Positions 52,799 through 62,111 of a stretch of DNA of 64,000 nt are shown piece after piece. Each line of letters opens with the position of its first letter. Position 1 is the first letter of the stretch. The position numbers were made by a program, and so were the translations under genes. This DNA is from Oikopleura dioica (taxonomy: Eukaryota; Animalia; Chordata), in assembly GCA_907165135.1 (NCBI GenBank), contig OU015568.1, positions 1,240,001-1,304,000 on the forward strand, in the 5' to 3' direction. The notes under the pieces were generated by a model, which saw only the letters and a program-made list of their open reading frames with translations, made no database searches and was not told the DNA's origin.

Positions 52799-55700
52799 AT
52801 GAAGCTTCTTTTGCTTCAACTCGTGGCGCTATCAACGCAATTAGCGCCACAGGAGTACCTCGATAAATGGGCGAGGAATTTGTTTATTGAGTATACTGTC
52901 GTAAATAATCTAGTGCGGACGACGGAATTTGATTATCCAGCGAATGAGGACGAATCTGCTTTTGAATTTAGAATATCAATCACAAATACTGGAACGGAAG
53001 AGCTCAATCTTCAGCCGCATTGGTCGATCTACTTTTATCACAGGAACTGGTTCTCTTCCTTGATTTCAGGAACCCTGAGATTCAATAGAAACCATGTGAA
53101 AGCGACACGATTCTCAGGGTTAACTCAACAGATCCAATCTACGAGCCTTTCAACATTGGCCAAGGCCTGGAAGTTGCTCATGTTGATGGGCAATTATGGA
53201 CAATCACCCCTGTCATAGGAGAATGGGCCCCGCTGAAGATTGGTGAAATGATTGAAATTAATCTCAAAGCTCTTGGCTGGGTGGTTTCCGATTCCACCAT
53301 CATGCCCAATTGGTACATTGCTTGCGTAGATTATGAAGAGTGCTCGGCGAAGAATCTTGAATCTACAAAAGTAACTGCTGACCGTGGCTTTACGTTCAAC
53401 AGACCAGACTTTGTCACTGAATTCCGCGGCGACAAAATGACAAAACGAGATGTTTTAGACGCATCCACTGTACCTATGGCTCCAGACGTCTGGATGATGA
53501 ACAACAATCTTAAAGTCGTTGAAGATGGAAAATCAGTGGAAAAATATGGCGTGCCGATTCTCCCGGTCCCTTCGTTTATCGAAACAAAACCAAGCACTCT
53601 CGAAGTTCAAAATGGAAAGGAACAACCTAGAAACGGAGTTCCGATCAGTTCGAGAAAATGGATTTATGACTATCAAGAAAATCTCGCTTGCCCAAACCCA
53701 ATTTGCAAGGAATGTTTACCTCAAAGCGGTCAAGGAACTGGTGGAACTCAGTGCAAATGCCAAGTGCTGGAGGAGCGACAAATTGGTGAAAAATGCATCC
53801 CATCGAGTACAACACAATGTTCGACATGGCTTATCAGAGTTGGATATTTGCATGGCGGGGATAAATGGCGACTTGCTACTTCATCTGATATCGTCTTAGA
53901 CATAGCAACCTGTGAAGATATTCCGGAAACCCTAAGCTTCATAACGAAGCTGATTGATAAGGTTCGTGAGACTGATGATGCTATGATCTTTACTGGAACC
54001 ATGTCTGATGCAGGGCCTCGATTTGAGCATAGAGGCGTTTTTATTGATGTCGCGCGAAATTTTTACCAAGCTGGAACAATAAGTTCATTAATGAACATCA
54101 TGCAGAGAGTTAATTTGAATGTTCTGCATCTTAAACTTGCTGATAACGAGGGCTGGCGACTCGAAATTCCAGAACTTCCGAAATTAACTGAGCTTGGAGC
54201 AAGCAGATGTCATGATCCTGCTGGACATAGTTGTCTCATGCCTCAATTAGGAACGGTTCAAATAGTTTATCTCGATTGAAATCAAGGATGAGAATATTCA
54301 CGAGCCGCTTTTAGGTTCTGGTGCCGATGTAGAGTCTCATGGAACAGGACATTTCACAGTTGCGACGTTCAGGGGTCTGCTTGCCGAGGCATCAAGAAAA
54401 GGAATAACCATAATTCCAGAGCTTGGGGCTCCTGGACACTCAAAAGCAGCAGTGAGAGGACAGTTTTAAAAATCATAAATTTTCAATAGGATTAAAATAA
54501 TATATATTTTCGATGTTAAAGAAAATCGATGATGTTGCCGTATTGATAATAAGCGCTACACTTATTTCACTTCCGATAGATACTGAAAGAACGAGTTGAT
54601 AACTTCGCTAAAGTTAACTAAAACTCAATGAAGCGATGGATGAAAGATCTGGTGATTCTTCAAAAGAAGGCGATTTCCGACTCTCAGATCCTGACCAAGT
54701 GGAGCTGTCCGCTGATTCCCATGGTTTCTACAATAACGTCATGAATCCCTGCATCAATGGAACAAGAAACTTTTTGGAAGTCGTAACGAAGAGTCTTTGG
54801 GCAACAATGGAGGATAGTTCTCATAAGATGAAGCATATTCATATTGGTGGAAATCAAGTGAACATGGAAGTGATTAAAAGTAGCCCTGCTTGTCAGGCAA
54901 TAATGGCAGAGCGAAAAATCAATGCTGAGCAGATTCTTCATGAATTCTTCCAGGTAATGGTATTTTTGGGTTTATATTTCAATGATTTAAGTGGTATGTT
55001 ACCATGACTTCCAATGTCGGATTCCAGATCCATGCTTGGCAAGATATTTTCACTTATGATGATGAAAAAACAGGCTACAAAGAGGTCTACCCGGTCGATG
55101 AATGGGAACTGGCAAATGGAACTTCAATCACTGCTTATCATCATCGAAGTCGATGGAATACTTCAGGTGAAATATTCTAGAAGTTTTCCCAACAAACCAT
55201 TTTAGTTTCTTTCCGTAAATACGTGGTATATTGTAAGTTTTTATTGATCGTAACAATGAGTCAAATCATTATACTATGTCCGAAACAAGGACTCTGTTTT
55301 CGTCATGACTTTACTTTAGTCTACAAAAAAAGCTCAATATAAATCGCAAACTAAATTATGAATAAGAAACGGAGGTTGGTCATCTTCTCGCAAACGCTGG
55401 CTACAGAACCGTCCTGATGCCAACGACTCATCTCAATTTTGATGCTGCGCAATCTCCTGATCCTCAGATGCGAGGATCCATGAACGATGCTCGGTTTTCC
55501 GATCTTGTCAAAGTCTTTAGCTTCCGCCCTCTCAATTTCTACGAAAATGCTTTGTATGACTTTTGGGGAAATCGACAAAACAGTAAAGTAGAAAGTTTCT
55601 ACCAAAAATACTCCGTGTCGGGGAATCGAACCCCGGTCGCCCGCGTGACAGGCGGGAATACTCACCACCAGGGATGTGCCTTCGCAGTGCGGATTCCGCA

Positions 55701-57684
55701 CTAAACTTCGCAGTGCGAGGTGCGATTGCGGAAATTTCGCACTTCGCACCGCACTCAGACCTGATATTTTTCATCGCACCGCACTTCGCACTTTCCGCAA
55801 AATTTTTGAAAAGTGCGATTCTTTTCGCAGTCGTATCCCGCACTTTTTAACCTTCCTCGCACTTCGCACTTTGCGGATTTTGCGGTCGATTCGCCGACAA
55901 TTTCTGTCAATTTTTGTCAATTGACCAAAATTTTTCTGCTGGAGCGTGCCTTCGGGCCGTCTCAGCCCCGTTCCATGATTTTTAAGTTTAAGGGGCTTGA
56001 CGGCCCTTCGGGCCGTCTCAGCCCCGTTCCATGATTTTTAAGTTTAAGGGGCTTGACGGCCCTTCGGGCCGTCTCAGCCCCGTTCCATGATTTTTAAGTT
56101 TAAGGGCTTCACGGCCCTTCGGGCCGTCTCAGCCCCGTTCCATGATTTTTAAGTTTTAGGGGCTTGACGGCCCTTCGGGCCGTCTCAGCCCCGTTCCATG
56201 ATTTTTAAGTTTAAGGGGCTTGACGGCCCTTCCGGCCGTCTCAGCCCCGTTCCATGATTTTTAAGTTTTAGGGGCTTGACAAAGGCTTTGAACTCTGAGT
56301 TGATCAATCTCAGTTCGTCCCCAACCCCACCTTCACCCATCATTTAAAAAATTCAAATTTTTTTTGTTTTTGCCTCAATTATGGTTTTGATCGAAAGTTT
56401 TGGAATTATTTCGGGTACGGAAGAAATTTTCGGCGATTTTTCTTTTTCCCACTCGCAGAGAATCGCAATTATTTCGCACTTTTCATCAATTATCCGCACT
56501 TCGCACTTTCGCACTTCCGCACTTTTCGCACTATCGCAAAATTTTCCGCAGTTTTTCTCCATATTTCGCACTTCGCACTCTGCGTCGCACTGCGAAGATA
56601 AATTTGAAAAAATCGCACTTCGCACCGCAGAAGAACCCGCAAAAAAAATCGCACTTCGCACCGCACCGCACTCGAAAAAATAGCAAAAGGCACATCCCTG
56701 CTCACCACTATACTAACACGGATCTGTGGATGAATCGATAACAGCATGAATTTCAGCACCCAGCTGCGACAATTCAATCGTACGATGCACGAGCCTGAGT
56801 GAGCCGGATAATATCGTCGGAATTCACGCTGGAATCTGGAGCCAAGAGATACTTGAAGGCAATCATTTCTACAAGCAGCTGTTTCCGAGGCTTTTTGCTT
56901 TTGCTCAACGCGCCTGGGCCGAGGGGTCGTGGGAGCAAGAACGAAGAACGGATCCATGGGCGATTTTTCAGGATCAGAAGTTTCTTGAAGACTTTAATTA
57001 TTTCCGATACTCTCTCAGGTAACCAATAAATTATGGCCCATAACTTATCGGCCATAACCTCCAACCAGCACAACCGCATACAATGTTCAGATACGAGCTT
57101 GACATCATGGAAAGCAATAAACAACAATATTGGCTTCCTAAGCCTGGGGCTTATACGCAGAACAGTATGTTATATACCGTATATATTTCTTTTTTGTATA
57201 TTTAATATATTTATATTAATATAATATTTTTATATTAATATATTATCATTTAAATCTGTACTTAAGGCTGACGAAGGCCCCTTTGAGGCCGAAACGCGTC
57301 CCAAAATAAATTTCAATCATCATTTAATATATTTGTTCTATTTTAAGGCGGATGGGGATTCAATACTCTTCTGAAATACAACGATATTATGTTCCGACAA
57401 AAGGGTGACTCTGATACCCGCTGGAGAACTCTAAGTGAAGTTGCTCGTAAGTCTTTCAAACTTTAAATTCACTTTTGACGGATTAACTAGACCTTGCAAA
57501 TACTGAAACTCTGATGGAAATGGTCACTTGTGGGAAAGCTTTCATCAATGACCAGCCGCTTTATATCTCTCCACCCATGGAATTTATTTTCAGCGAAAGG
57601 ATTTTCGAAGAACCTCGACCGGACAGTGCCACAAGTCTCCTTCCTTCTTTCTTTCTTTTCTTGAGCATTTTCTATCTGTTCTGA
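52799..57684 (+). CDS. Chitobiase-type GH20 beta-N-acetylhexosaminidase homolog, predicted GPI-anchored and catalytically altered
   Basis: Signal peptide, CHB-like N-domain (WVVSDSTIMPNWYI), RGVFIDVARNF, LHLKLADNEGWRLEIP, ELGAPGH, HIGGNQ, LANAGY, LFPRLFAFAQRAW, WLPKPGA; ends PDSATSLLPSFFLFLSIFYLF-TGA (57682-57684). Confidence 0.85.
55669..56700. mobile_element. hAT-superfamily non-autonomous element (1032 bp)
   Basis: Perfect 12-bp TIR CAGGGATGTGCC / GGCACATCCCTG, perfect 8-bp TSD CTCACCAC (55661-55668, 56701-56708), many subterminal GCACTTCGCA repeats. Confidence 0.9.
55948..56280. repeat. Six tandem copies of a 56-bp unit containing a GC-rich palindrome
   Basis: Unit GACGGCCCTTCGGGCCGTCTCAGCCCCGTTCCATGATTTTTAAGTTTAAGGGGCTT; TTCGGG recurs at 55951, 56007, 56063, 56118 and 56174, with a TTCCGG variant at 56230. 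Confidence 0.95.
57262..57310 (+). ncRNA. Minimal type I hammerhead ribozyme motif (Penelope-like-element type) in an intron
   Basis: GG-CTGACGA-A-GGCC-CCTTTGA-GGCC-GAAA-CGC-GTC|CC-AAAATAAA: conserved core, 4-bp stem II, palindromic ACGCGT stem III, GUC cleavage triplet at 57298-57300. Confidence 0.65.
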
Positions 57685-57859
57685 TTGCTGTAAAATAAAA
57701 CTTCTCAAAAAGAGCTAAGGACGCTGTTTTTCTTCTTTTAAAATAAATATTTTTATTACAGGTACATTATTGCAAGAAGAACTATACAACAGTAGTAGTG
57801 GTATATCAGTACGATTGGTTTTAGTAGGCATTTGTAAACTGGCGGGAGATGTAATAAAC

Positions 57860-59232
57860 TCATGTCTCTATATCGCCACCATGTGTCGAGCTGTCATCGG
57901 CGAGAGATGTTACTCTGGAAAGCGTTGGTGTCTGAAAATTCCAAAGTGAAAAACCGTATGAACAACAGTGGAAAACATACCCTTGGAGTAGTATCGCGAA
58001 CACCACCCTGAATTTCCGCCAGCTGTTGTCTGAAGTTGTCGCCCATCGGGTCATCCTCGATTCTGAAGCTTCTGTTTCTCATTCCCAGTCGATCAAGAGT
58101 CGATTCAAACTAAAGAAGCATCCGTGTTAGTATAGTGGTGAGTATTCCCGCCTGTCACGCGGGCGACCGGGGTTCGATTCCCCGACACGGAGCGTTTTTG
58201 GTACACATTTGTTCTCACCTCCATTTCACTCTCTGTTTTTGGCCCGAGCATCATCTCTTGTCTTTCTCTTCTATCGATGTAACTAAGGATGACAGGCACT
58301 CCAAAGACGTTGAAGAGCGAATAGAGGATGAAAATCGTCCAAACAGCCCAGCTGATTCCGTCGCCAGCGACGATTTCTTTGGAAGATTTGTCGACTTTGT
58401 TGATGATTTGAGTCATTCTTCCATGAAAATGAGCGAGAAGAGCGAGTTGGAGGATGACTTGAAGAAGAATTGCTGTTTTAGGCGTTTTCATTAGCCCAAA
58501 CAAATTTTTGGCAAGTATACGCAATGGGGTTAAAACCAAAGAAGCGCCCTTTTCCTGATACAAATGCATAACCAACAGATTTGATCAATCTGACACTAGC
58601 GCTCTCAACCGTCGTCAACCAAGCAATTGACATCATCAAAACCACCAGCGGAATCGCAGACGTCCAATAGAGCTGCGGAAGAACATCAAATCGCATTTCA
58701 TCAATTGCTTTTGCATAATCAACAGACTCTGAAAGAAGCGGACAGACTTCCACCAGCTCGATGTTCTTTCTTAGGTAGGCAGCCCATTCTTCTTTGTCGA
58801 GTAGGGTTGATCTTATTTTCTTAAAAGGGTTATCTATTGAAAAAGAGGAAGGAATAAACCTGAATTCGTTTATCATCATTGCATCCATCAACATTCTCAG
58901 CGAGGTGGATTAATTGAGGGAAAATGGTTTTTCGATATGTTCCATCTTTCAAGCTCAAAAAATGCATAAAGAAAAATACTATTCTTTAGTTTTTCAAGCT
59001 TTTCCTAGTCTATCTTCCATAAAATCGACAGCATTTTGCGTCCCTGCGATAGATTTCACTACTGCGACGATATAAAGAGCATTAGCTAAGTAGGTAAACC
59101 ATCCGATAAAATTCGCGCCTGATCTGAATTTATTCAAAAAATCAGTGAACTTTAAAAATCGGAAATTTGCTACCTGAGTGAGAAAAAGCAGCAGAACGAG
59201 GTGACTCTCGGGCACAAAGGCGATGAGCTCAT
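57860..59232 (-). CDS. Four-TM membrane protein (LAPTM/DUF4728-like N-terminal CCFFSLRSG motif)
   Basis: MSSSPLCPRVTSFCCFFSLRSGANFIGW..., four hydrophobic segments; spliced C-terminal exons FESTLDRLGMRNR... and TPTLSRVTSLADDSSTHGGDIET-TGA. Confidence 0.55.
58121..58192 (+). tRNA. trnD-GTC: tRNA-Asp (anticodon GTC), intact
   Basis: TCCGTGT acceptor stem pairs with ACACGGA, D-arm TAGTATAGTGGTGAGTA, anticodon loop CTGTCAC, T-loop GGTTCGATTCC, downstream TTTTT. Confidence 0.97.
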
Positions 59233-59732: not shown

Positions 59733-62111
59733 CTAAAGCCTGTACATCGGCTGATAGGTCTCCAATTCTTTCGATTTGATAAAGAGCTCGTGGTTTCTTC
59801 CAAATTCGAAAATGTCCATACATTTCTTGAGCGTATCGCGCGTCATTCGGGGGTCAATCGTGCCGTCGTCCCAAATTCTAGCGCTGGAAAAGAAGGACTC
59901 GTCTTCCCAGTCGTTTCCGGATCTGAGTCCCATCGAGGCTGGCCAGCGGAAGAAGAAATTAGGATCGTATTGGCGAGGACAGAGGTCGGATAGGCGGTTT
60001 GCTCCGGCGCAGGCGATGGTTACTTTTGGGCTCTAGAATTTTCATTCGGAAAATGTTTAAAAGTCTGCCTTACCTTGGATGTAGAAACAGCGGAGATATA
60101 AGCAGCTCTAGCTCGCATAGCGGCAGCAGAAGTAGCTACAGAGTCGCTTGAAGCATCGAAATCATCGTGGAACAACGAGTTTTGAAGGAAAACAACTTAT
60201 TTTCGCATTTTACAATCGTTTTTACCAAAAAAATCAGCTAAGACTCCTAAAGAGCGCAAACACGAATCCTGGAACGCGTCGTTCAGAGGCTAAATGAACG
60301 AAATGAGCTCCTTTGAGAGCTGCGTCGGAGTCAAAGTTGCCATTGTTCGCGACGAAACCGACCATATGTCCGCTTACTCGGCCATATCCGCAGACCAGCC
60401 CAGTACCGTACAGTTCTAAGGGTGAATAAACGCGGGAAAGTGGAATTGAAGAAGGTACCTTTGAATTCGTGGAAAACAGAGCCGTCTGTAAGGCAAGCAA
60501 TGGTCAGACGAGCATCAGATTTGGTCGAAGCGACATCGAGAATATCATACTCGACATTTGGTTCTACCGCAGCTTTTCTCGTCGTTGCGAATTCTAAACG
60601 AGAGGAATTAAAAGAAGACGAGAAGAGAAGGTGTTTACCTGGAATATTGAGCGTTTCGAAAATAGACCTAACATAGGCAGCAGATTCTTCCTCGTCTCTG
60701 GCGAAATAATCTGCACATCCGGAAACGGAGCTGTGGAGCATCGCTCCACCAAGCTCTTCTGCAGTGACTTTTTCGCCCGTCGCGGCTTCTACGAGAGGCG
60801 GTCCACCGAGGAACATCGTTCCCATCTTGTCAACGAAAACCACTGAAAAGAAGGAGTTAAAAAAAGGAAGAAAATAGGAATCGAGATGGAAATGGACTAT
60901 TCATAGGACTTTTAAGCCATTGAGCTCACTTTAGGGGCTCCAAAATTTTAACTATGGATCGGCAATGTATAAATACCCGCCCGAAATAGAGTGACTTGTT
61001 TGCCGAATTACATAAGCGCATCAAACATCAAAAAATAAACTTTGTACTTACTTTCGTCACACATAGAAGGCGTATACGCTCCGCCAGCGGTACAGCTTCC
61101 ACAAACCACGGAGACCATCGGAATTCCCATAGAACTGATGTTTGCGATGTTGTAGAAGTTTCGGCCCCCGTCGTTTTTGTCGGGAAAGATTTCAGACTGG
61201 AGAGGGAGGAAGGCTCCGCCAGAATCGACCAGGTTGATCGAAGGGAGGTAGTTTTGGCGGGAGATGTCGGACAATCGATTAGACTTTTGGACGGTGATGG
61301 GATAGGAGGTTCCACCCTAAATATTTCGATTAAAAATGAGACTTATTTACAAATTATCTAAACTTGGTCCAGAAATCTATGTTCAAAGCCAGAGGAAGGC
61401 TCCTGAGAAGCGGATCCGTCAAGGCTTCAAAGTGTTCTCAGGACCCTTACTCAGGCTCGAAACGCAGATTGACGAGCCCAGTATCTCAATTCAAGCCAAT
61501 TTATGAAGATTATCATCAGAAAAAATGGCCTCAATTTTAGGAATCAGTGACTTTGTTAACTTACTTTTACAGTAGCATCTGATCCACCAATACAAACAGG
61601 AATTCCATGAACCCAAGCGATGCAGGTCATCAGAGTCGCCCTCGGAATCGATCCATAATCCAAATCATGCCCAGCCAAAAGCCCAATTTCTAGCACTTCT
61701 GTTCCTTCGTCTTTTATCGCGTTTATTCTTTCCTCGACTAGAAAAAGGTATTGGAAGAAGGGATGAGATTTGTCTTACTGAAATATTTATTTCGGCTAGC
61801 ATGGAGTTTGTGCGCCTTTTCTGAGCCTCCTTTTCGCGCAAATTCTTCGATTTCTTGAAGCTTTTCGATCCAGTTTAGCTGAGCTGCTTTGTTAGCTGAT
61901 TTCTGTTTTACAGGGTTTCCACTACGTAACTTCTAGTACTCATTTTCACGGAGTTTTGACGAAGTTACCCTCTGTATAAAAAATCCGTTAAAATGTTGAC
62001 ATCTAGCTTATTTGAAAAAGCTGTAAAACGAATTCCTGAAGCATTAGCGGCAACATCACCGGTCAGTTTCTGCGGCAGTTGGCGAAACTTTCTCACCGCC
62101 GTTCGAATCAT
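59733..62111 (-). CDS. MCCC2-like: Methylcrotonoyl-CoA carboxylase beta-chain-like (acyl-CoA carboxyltransferase), mitochondrial
   Basis: Basic targeting-like N-terminus [86 protein letters not shown]. Confidence 0.85.

Follow-up and report, generated by a model that had tools for sequence, protein, structure and literature searches.

A chitobiase-type GH20 gene of Oikopleura dioica with Asn-Gln at the catalytic dyad probably encodes a non-catalytic surface protein kept by selection

Introduction

The stretch of DNA analysed here (the window) comprises 64,000 nucleotides of the Oikopleura dioica genome (contig OU015568.1, positions 1,240,001 to 1,304,000) and contains a gene for a chitobiase homolog in which the catalytic Asp-Glu pair of glycoside hydrolase family 20 (GH20) reads Asn-Gln. 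This gene, here called GH20-NQ, raises the question of what a protein of this kind does: whether it still acts as an enzyme, is a decaying copy, or serves an end other than catalysis. GH20 catalysis is substrate-assisted; in Serratia chitobiase and related enzymes E540 is the acid/base, and D539 and Y669 position the acetamido group of the substrate. A first-pass annotation of the window had proposed a glycosylphosphatidylinositol (GPI)-anchored pseudo-enzyme, possibly a binder of N-acetylglucosamine (GlcNAc) or chitin comparable to the chi-lectins. The pseudo-enzyme part of this proposal is supported by what follows: the pair is lost, the loss is conserved in orthologs, and purifying selection is strong. 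The binding part needs revision. We consider it likely that GH20-NQ is a selected gene whose product is a secreted, probably GPI-anchored GH20 protein of the chitobiase type with four putative domains, unable to hydrolyse N-acetylhexosamine glycosides and acting as a non-catalytic binder at the cell surface.

Results

Family membership and domain architecture

The gene occupies 52799-57684 on the + strand, and its ten exons join into a coding sequence of 2883 nt (960 codons) with no internal stop, in line with the earlier description of an intact reading frame over about ten exons. The region first annotated, 54840-57684, is a genuine part of the gene that runs only from the NQ motif to the stop codon; the start lies at 52799. 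Profile, structure and database searches were run exon by exon, and exons were aligned as separate fragments; the joined translation served for checks of frame, stop and residue numbers.

Assignment to the chitobiase-type GH20 proteins is borne out by the profile searches. Pfam PF00728 (Glyco_hydro_20) exceeds its cut-off of 22.3 bits in exons 2, 3, 4 and 7 (scores in Table 1), which together cover profile positions 1-348 in order, and PF03173 (CHB_HEX; cut-off 25 bits) is matched in exon 2 and weakly in exon 1. Only two loci with CHB_HEX occur in the genome (64.3-Mb, 19-contig assembly): this gene and one at C1:11.14 Mb. Exon-by-exon Pfam searches gave no match to PF02838 (domain II) or PF03174 (CHB_HEX_C), and the gene at C1:11.14 Mb likewise lacks both matches; the corresponding domain II and C-terminal regions of the two genes are colinear. 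Among solved structures, the nearest are 9joq and the chitobiase of Serratia marcescens (1qba, with its mutants 1c7s and 1c7t). Of 67 family-invariant columns, each at least 95% identical among homologs, 45 are retained (46 with the Gly of a codon split by an exon junction).

Substitutions in the active site

The substitutions are concentrated where catalysis would take place. In Serratia chitobiase numbering (chain index + 27, checked by R322 corresponding to R349), the changed residues are D379N, D539N, E540Q, W639H, Y669N, W685N and E739Q, and the kept ones R349, D378, E380, H452, W616, D671 and W737. The codons CAT ATT GGT GGA AAT CAA encode HIGGNQ, which HMMER pairs with HIGADE of 6ezr and HMGGDE of 9joq. 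Alignment to 1qba places R349 in DVARNF, and D378, Asn for D379 and E380 in LADNEG; it sets HLNFD against YMD (Asn for Y669, D671 kept), MRGSMN against ERGYYW (Asn for W685) and GIWSQE against WSE (W737 kept, Gln for E739). These assignments agree with the motif changes listed in the first-pass annotation (HxGGDE to HIGGNQ, DDEG to DNEG with DVARNF kept, YFD to NFD, ERGYYW to MRGSMN, WSE to WSQ). To that list we add AYHH, which has His for W639 (mapped through the alignment of the intact paralog, described below, with 1qba); IHAWQD retains W616. The remaining listed change, EIDxPGH to ELGAPGH, is present in the sequence and is not specific to this gene: since the intact paralog also lacks the Asp of this motif (it has Val), we leave it outside the inactivation set.

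How unusual these changes are can be gauged from 116 full-length chitobiase-type GH20 proteins, bacterial and animal, in which the pocket positions are 97-100% invariant; the catalytic pair has Asp in 115 and Glu in 113. When the 67 family-invariant columns are divided into 15 active-site columns and 52 others, changes specific to GH20-NQ fall in 7 of the 15 as against 5 of the 52 (Fisher p = 0.003). Of the changes private to the intact paralog, which number four, none lies in the active site; its sole active-site change, at D448, is shared with the NQ gene.

Because E540, D539 and Y669 are all gone, hexosaminidase activity of the NQ protein is very unlikely, judging from its residues.

Conservation and selection

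The orthologous sequences cover exons 1-4 and 6, and estimates of nonsynonymous and synonymous divergence (dN, dS) cover the first 560 codons. A word search with the exon-4 open reading frame (ORF) returned four clusters at 69-86% identity; together they comprise 16 distinct sequences, drawn from assemblies of ENA, JGI and Logan. All 16 read H[IV]HIGGNQV and none has the DE pair. These ORFs continue into the intron, and similarity to the window ends exactly after LHEFFQ, which is the predicted donor. For exon 6, an ortholog that is 87% identical (P0153) keeps HLNFD and MRGSMND, with N669 and N685, and diverges near the predicted donor; in it the pocket loop HLNFDAA..DPQMRGSMNDARFSD is identical at 22 of 25 positions.

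A 4.7-kb contig (JGI contig Ga0115008_10025940, here L016) contains orthologous exons 1-3 together with the first part of exon 4. Over the 560 codons shared with the window, amino-acid identity is 79% and identity at third codon positions 44%; dN is 0.14-0.16 and dS is saturated (2.4 by LWL85, 4.9 by maximum likelihood), giving an omega (dN/dS) of about 0.03-0.07. The DNEG, DVARNF and ELGAPGH motifs are conserved in this contig, and the ALGWVVSDSTIMPNWYIACVDYE block of CHB_HEX is identical. On these estimates the gene is kept under strong purifying selection. Across lineages, exon 4 is 88-90% and 75% identical; the same segment of the intact paralog is 90-91% and 78-79% identical, the latter figure against the Bergen proteins CBY11805 and CBY36384. 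By this measure exon 4 changes at the rate of its counterpart in the intact paralog. A metagenome scan found one locus, which ends 5' of the NQ codons, and a representative protein search found no full-length NQ protein, its best match being 46% identical.

An intact paralog and an old duplication

The second CHB_HEX locus, 9.8 Mb away at C1:11.14 Mb, encodes a 938-aa protein (CAG5087785.1, OKI2018_I69 PAR.g11634; P0137 in our alignments) that keeps DDEG, HIGGDE, W639, Y669, W685 and E739 and is 37-52% identical to the NQ protein. The two genes share chromosome, architecture, appendicularian clade, the region of a Cys-rich insert, the GPI-like tail and the loss of D448. The nine GH20 loci in the genome other than GH20-NQ all read H[LI]GGDE.

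An exon-2 tree groups the appendicularian sequences in one clade (support of 100 in the Shimodaira-Hasegawa-like approximate likelihood ratio test, SH-aLRT). Within it stand the NQ sequences as one clade (99), the DE sequences of O. dioica as another (100) and P0003, a further DE sequence, from a metatranscriptome; the tree leaves the branching order of these three unsettled. The stems of the NQ and DE clades are of similar length (0.86 and 0.83). The separation of the two clades, together with the 37-52% identity of the paralogs, indicates that the duplication predates the split of the sampled O. dioica lineages and is, on this sequence comparison, old. A tunicate-specific transfer from bacteria is unsupported: CHB_HEX GH20 proteins are widespread in molluscs, cnidarians, annelids, brachiopods and Ciona. 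Since such proteins are frequent among marine invertebrates, and the exon-2 tree does not separate animals from bacteria, we make no claim of transfer.

Upstream of the intact paralog (locus G000:C1:11136000-11145999, about 1150-2970; L015), ORFs resemble a Cys-loop ligand-gated ion channel, with a WRPDIVLYNN motif judged by eye from the translation.

Exon structure and non-canonical introns

The gene model (Table 1) was built from three-frame translation and splice-site inspection and then refined against L016 and homologs. In tblastn comparisons all ten exons are matched colinearly by the intact paralog, the metatranscriptome homolog P0003 and a homolog from Ciona savignyi (P0055).

Table 1. 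Exons, two introns and the polyadenylation signal of the GH20-NQ gene, in window coordinates; residues in brackets after an equals sign are in Serratia chitobiase numbering.
Feature	Coordinates	Strand	Content and support
Exon 1	52799..53049	+	ATG, signal-peptide-like N-terminus, start of CHB_HEX; weak PF03173 match; 83% identical in L016
Exon 2	53103..54250	+	CHB_HEX, domain II with Cys-rich insert, start of GH20 barrel; R402 (CGA 54055-54057, = R349), N432 of LADNEG (AAC 54145-54147, = D379N); PF03173 43 bits, PF00728 74.9 bits
Intron 2	54251..54314	+	GA-AG preferred, 64 nt
Exon 3	54315..54458	+	ELGAPGH with H508 (= H452); PF00728 25.5 bits; 80% identical in L016
Intron 3	54459..54633	+	GA-AG, 175 nt; sole in-frame donor/acceptor pair joining AAVR to (A)MDERSGD
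Exon 4	54634..54953	+	HIGGNQ with N588 and Q589 (AAT CAA, 54852-54857) for D539 and E540; PF00728 27.6 bits
Exon 5	54992..55166	+	W637 (= W616, kept), H672 (CAT 55142-55144, = W639H)
Exon 6	55367..55582	+	HLNFD with N703 (AAT 55435-55437, = Y669N) and D705 (= D671, kept); MRGSMN with N719 (AAC 55483-55485, = W685N); aligned to 1qba and 9joq
Exon 7	56757..57018	+	GIWSQE with W779 (= W737, kept) and Q781 (CAA 56843-56845, = E739Q); PF00728 26.1 bits
Exon 8	57091..57164	+	Start of C-terminal domain (YWLPKPG); tblastn with the intact paralog
Exon 9	57348..57446	+	C-terminal domain; tblastn with the intact paralog, E 3.6e-4
Exon 10	57491..57684	+	End of C-terminal domain, GPI-signal-like tail, stop TGA 57682-57684; tblastn support
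Polyadenylation signal	57694..57699	+	AATAAA, 10 nt past the stop

At the 5' end, the signal-peptide-like sequence MKLLLLQLVALSTQLA (52799-52846) is conserved in L016, and similarity between the two is lost 5' of the ATG. The acceptor of exon 2 was set at 53103 by conservation with L016, which displaced a candidate at 53118; that of exon 5 was placed at 54992, replacing 55028, because WYVTMTSNVGFQIHAWQD then aligns with the intact paralog and P0003. Within exon 2 (53640-53830), domain II contains a Cys-rich insert of about 50 aa (ACPNPICKECLP...CKCQ...CIPSSTTQCSTW). It is kept in the NQ ortholog and has a counterpart in the intact appendicularian paralogs; Pfam does not recognise it, and the bacterial and other animal homologs compared lack it.

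The nine introns measure 53, 64, 175, 38, 200, 1174, 72, 183 and 44 nt, and seven of them have GT-AG ends. For intron 3, no canonical donor/acceptor alternative is in frame, and its GA-AG ends and phase are identical in L016; the gene requires at least one GA-AG intron. For intron 2, GA-AG is preferred because it leaves the family-invariant LGSG contiguous in the window and L016 alike. A GT-AG solution, in frame in both lineages, is disfavoured, as it puts 4 non-conserved residues into this invariant motif. A helix that would close the GA-AG intron ends was sought by folding, and the z values (-1.35 for the window, -0.11 for L016) are not significant.

Intron 2 also holds a 21-nt block (54281-54301 in the window, 4214-4234 in L016; positions approximate, by eye) that is identical at 16 of 21 positions (ATCAAGGATGAGAATATTCAC and ATCAAGGAAGAAAACATCAAC), with differences mostly at every third base; the rest of the intron has diverged. 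A coding reading of the block fails, since a stop follows in L016, and the block may act in the splicing of this non-canonical intron.

Membrane tail and surroundings

The protein ends in the tail PDSATSLLPSFFLFLSIFYLF (57619-57681), followed directly by the stop; Kyte-Doolittle hydropathy averages 2.2 over its last 15 residues. The order fits that of a GPI signal as judged by inspection and hydropathy: small residues (DSA), a short spacer and the hydrophobic run FFLFLSIFYLF. The small-residue site and hydrophobic tail noted previously are therefore present as described. Tails of this kind are also seen in the intact paralog and among the homologs from Capitella, Montipora, Argonauta, Lottia and Nematostella. 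The proposal of a GPI-anchored protein thus agrees with the signal-peptide-like N-terminus and the GPI-like tail, and loses force as a distinguishing mark of this gene, the tail being shared with the intact paralog and many animal homologs; GPI anchoring is plausible as a putative trait of the family.

Within intron 6, the stretch 55611-56727 contains a 1,032-nt element at 55669-56700 with perfect 14-nt terminal inverted repeats (CAGGGATGTGCCTT), flanked by an 8-bp target duplication (CTCACCAC) at 55661-55668 and 56701-56708. Six 56-nt tandem units lie within it (55893-56329), and it splits a minus-strand tRNA-Asp(GUC)-like copy; an intact tRNA-Asp is found on the + strand at 58121-58193. Its CAG... 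ends, together with the target duplication of 8 bp, suggest that the element is a hAT-type miniature inverted-repeat transposable element. Just downstream of the gene, a weak PIG-P-like ORF on the minus strand (58478-58891) scores below threshold (E 0.0066; 16.8 bits where the cut-off is 39.3), and a carboxyl-transferase exon lies at 60331-60840, also on the minus strand (E 4.8e-17). Neighbouring ORFs in the window give no functional context for GH20-NQ.

Discussion

A probable rebuilt pocket on a conserved scaffold

These observations are best explained by the following, probable course of events. An active appendicularian chitobiase gene would have been duplicated, one partner surviving intact at C1:11.14 Mb. 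In the other, the acid/base Glu and the acetamido-polarising Asp would have become amides (Q589 and N588), with D379N and E739Q as two further amides, and the residues of the N-acetyl cradle and sugar stacking would have been replaced by His or Asn (W639H, Y669N, W685N). The fold-defining residues, R349, H452, W616, W737, the CHB_HEX domain and the membrane tail are retained, and the former active site has probably been rebuilt as a more open and more polar pocket. Four amide exchanges, together with the kept R349 and W737, suggest that a hydrogen-bonding pocket with a stacking platform persists. Because W639, W685 and Y669 are now His or Asn, an altered ligand preference is indicated instead of a simple GlcNAc or chitin lectin, and the ligand of the rebuilt pocket is probably something other than terminal GlcNAc. 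The earlier suggestion of a GlcNAc/chitin binder in the manner of the chi-lectins is accordingly unlikely: with W639, Y669, W685 and D539 turned into His or Asn and E739 into Gln, the GlcNAc site appears dismantled, and a plain GlcNAc or chitin lectin is doubtful.

Several points weigh against this interpretation. GPI anchoring was judged by a hand heuristic. Exon 6, which carries pocket loops, is 87% identical between NQ orthologs against 97% in the intact paralog, although the lineages compared may differ. The replaced residues are conserved only to the extent that the protein-wide average predicts (0.79^5, about 0.3); by this reckoning their conservation is on its own no proof of a functional pocket.

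Other readings of the gene

Another reading is a non-catalytic role that leaves glycan binding in the old pocket aside: the protein might scaffold protein-protein contacts, assist or regulate the active paralog, or carry CHB_HEX or the Cys-rich insert. The dismantled acetamido pocket and stacking platform agree with it, as does the observation that the most conserved stretches include CHB_HEX and the N-terminal barrel and not the pocket loops alone; the two paralogs have similar membrane tails and could meet on one surface. Against it, the exchange of four carboxylates for isosteric amides leaves the geometry of hydrogen bonding unchanged, R349 and W737 remain in place, and the pocket loop is well conserved in the exon-6 ortholog. 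Serratia chitobiase is not known to depend on a partner. We regard a role of this kind as improbable, though worth keeping in mind.

A more specific version of the surface-binder reading, which we offer as a long shot, is that the protein binds the ends of non-acetylated beta-1,4-glucan (cellulose), or another house glycan, while tethered to the membrane of the oikoplastic epithelium, and holds or patterns house fibrils, as one of a recurrent set of animal GH20 surface lectins. The four amides and the His/Asn/Asn cradle might then reflect a change of specificity towards non-acetylated glucan and not ruin. More widely, animal chitobiase-like GH20 proteins may have repeatedly yielded an unrecognised class of surface lectins, in larvaceans, mytilids, unionids and abalone.

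As general background, the O. dioica house consists of cellulose and glycoproteins, and within the epithelium that builds it the perioral and giant Eisen cells show high expression of chitin synthase genes; GH6, GH9 and GH16 appear in the glycoside-hydrolase supplement to this single-cell preprint, and GH20 does not (bioRxiv 10.64898/2026.03.31.715263). A GPI anchor has been predicted for some house proteins (PMC3390340).

It is very improbable that the protein is still an enzyme of another mechanism or substrate, for example a transglycosylase, or hydrolyses by means of other residues. D378, E380, H452 and D671 remain, and some other families with substrate-assisted catalysis, GH85 for one, tolerate Asn where the polarising Asp would stand; but all 16 orthologs have Gln for the acid/base Glu, Y669, W685, W639 and E739 are lost as well, and no GH20 member is known to function without the Glu, nor did full-text searches return one.

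That the gene is a decaying or unexpressed pseudogene with a leftover open frame is strongly disfavoured by its pattern of change, even though a transposon of about 1 kb sits in intron 6 and non-canonical GA-AG introns must be invoked. Omega is at most 0.07 at saturated dS, the frame is open for 960 codons, and the exon boundaries, GA-AG introns and phase are conserved at about 79% protein identity; moreover, the orthologous ORFs are conserved only as far as the donors, and exon 4 has changed as fast as its counterpart in the active paralog. That the two codons reflect a mistake of sequencing or assembly is refuted by the same NQ in 16 independent sequences (ENA, JGI and Logan assemblies) and by five further coordinated pocket changes in other exons.

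Comparison with known systems

The preferred reading, a selected, non-catalytic surface GH20 protein, can be set beside several known systems. Serratia chitobiase (1QBA/1QBB; mutants 1C7S and 1C7T) and the 9JOQ hexosaminidase align colinearly with the NQ protein, in which the order is likewise CHB_HEX, putative domain II, GH20 barrel and putative C-terminal domain; the Oikopleura gene differs from Serratia chitobiase in being eukaryotic and spliced, and in having the Cys-rich insert of domain II and a hydrophobic C-terminal tail. With its intact paralog it forms a natural experiment, an intact and an apparently dead chitobiase in one small genome, both under selection, in which the dead copy lacks the elements of N-acetyl recognition as well as those of catalysis; this built-in active control heightens the interest of the case.

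In tunicates, glycosidases on ascidian gamete surfaces or released from eggs have been proposed to serve as lectin-like binders at the pH of seawater (PMC9265791). The surface binding role would be similar, but those enzymes are catalytically competent and of lysosomal type, and the parallel with the NQ gene is one of analogy only.

The GH18 chi-lectins YKL-39 and YKL-40 (PMC7828330) are likewise extracellular, have lost the catalytic acid and are kept by selection. They belong to another fold family, however, and keep their aromatic sugar groove; because the N-acetyl pocket and stacking Trp residues of the NQ protein have been replaced, retained chitin binding cannot be assumed for it. A review of pseudo-glycosidases covers GH18, Klotho (GH1) and a sialidase-like protein and does not include GH20 (PMC7828330), and our full-text literature search returned no report of a natural GH20 pseudoenzyme, an inactive GH20 lectin or an Oikopleura hexosaminidase.

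The class of pseudo-glycosidases is thus already known, and molluscan sequences indicate that the GH20 case is not unique in nature either. Mytilus californianus and M. coruscus have HFGGDK with Y669H, Sinanodonta woodiana and Potamilus streckersoni have HFGGNN, Gigantopelta aegis has HFGGSD, and in a two-unit protein of Haliotis rubra the C-terminal unit is degenerate at eight pocket positions (P0085, P0093, P0194, P0301, P0020 and P0157 in our set). Two tandem chitobiase-type units in proteins of 1,600-1,800 aa are also seen in Pecten, Biomphalaria, Haliotis, Mya and the ichthyosporean Sphaeroforma (P0154, P0156-P0159, P0165). Like the NQ protein, the molluscan proteins with an altered dyad are members of the animal chitobiase-like family, and their losses of the catalytic pair are independent events; unlike it, most of them keep the remainder of the pocket (W685 and E739), and they lie on separate branches of the tree and are uncharacterised. 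Taken together, the larvacean and molluscan losses point to a recurrent and unstudied path in marine invertebrates, from surface hexosaminidase to non-catalytic surface protein.

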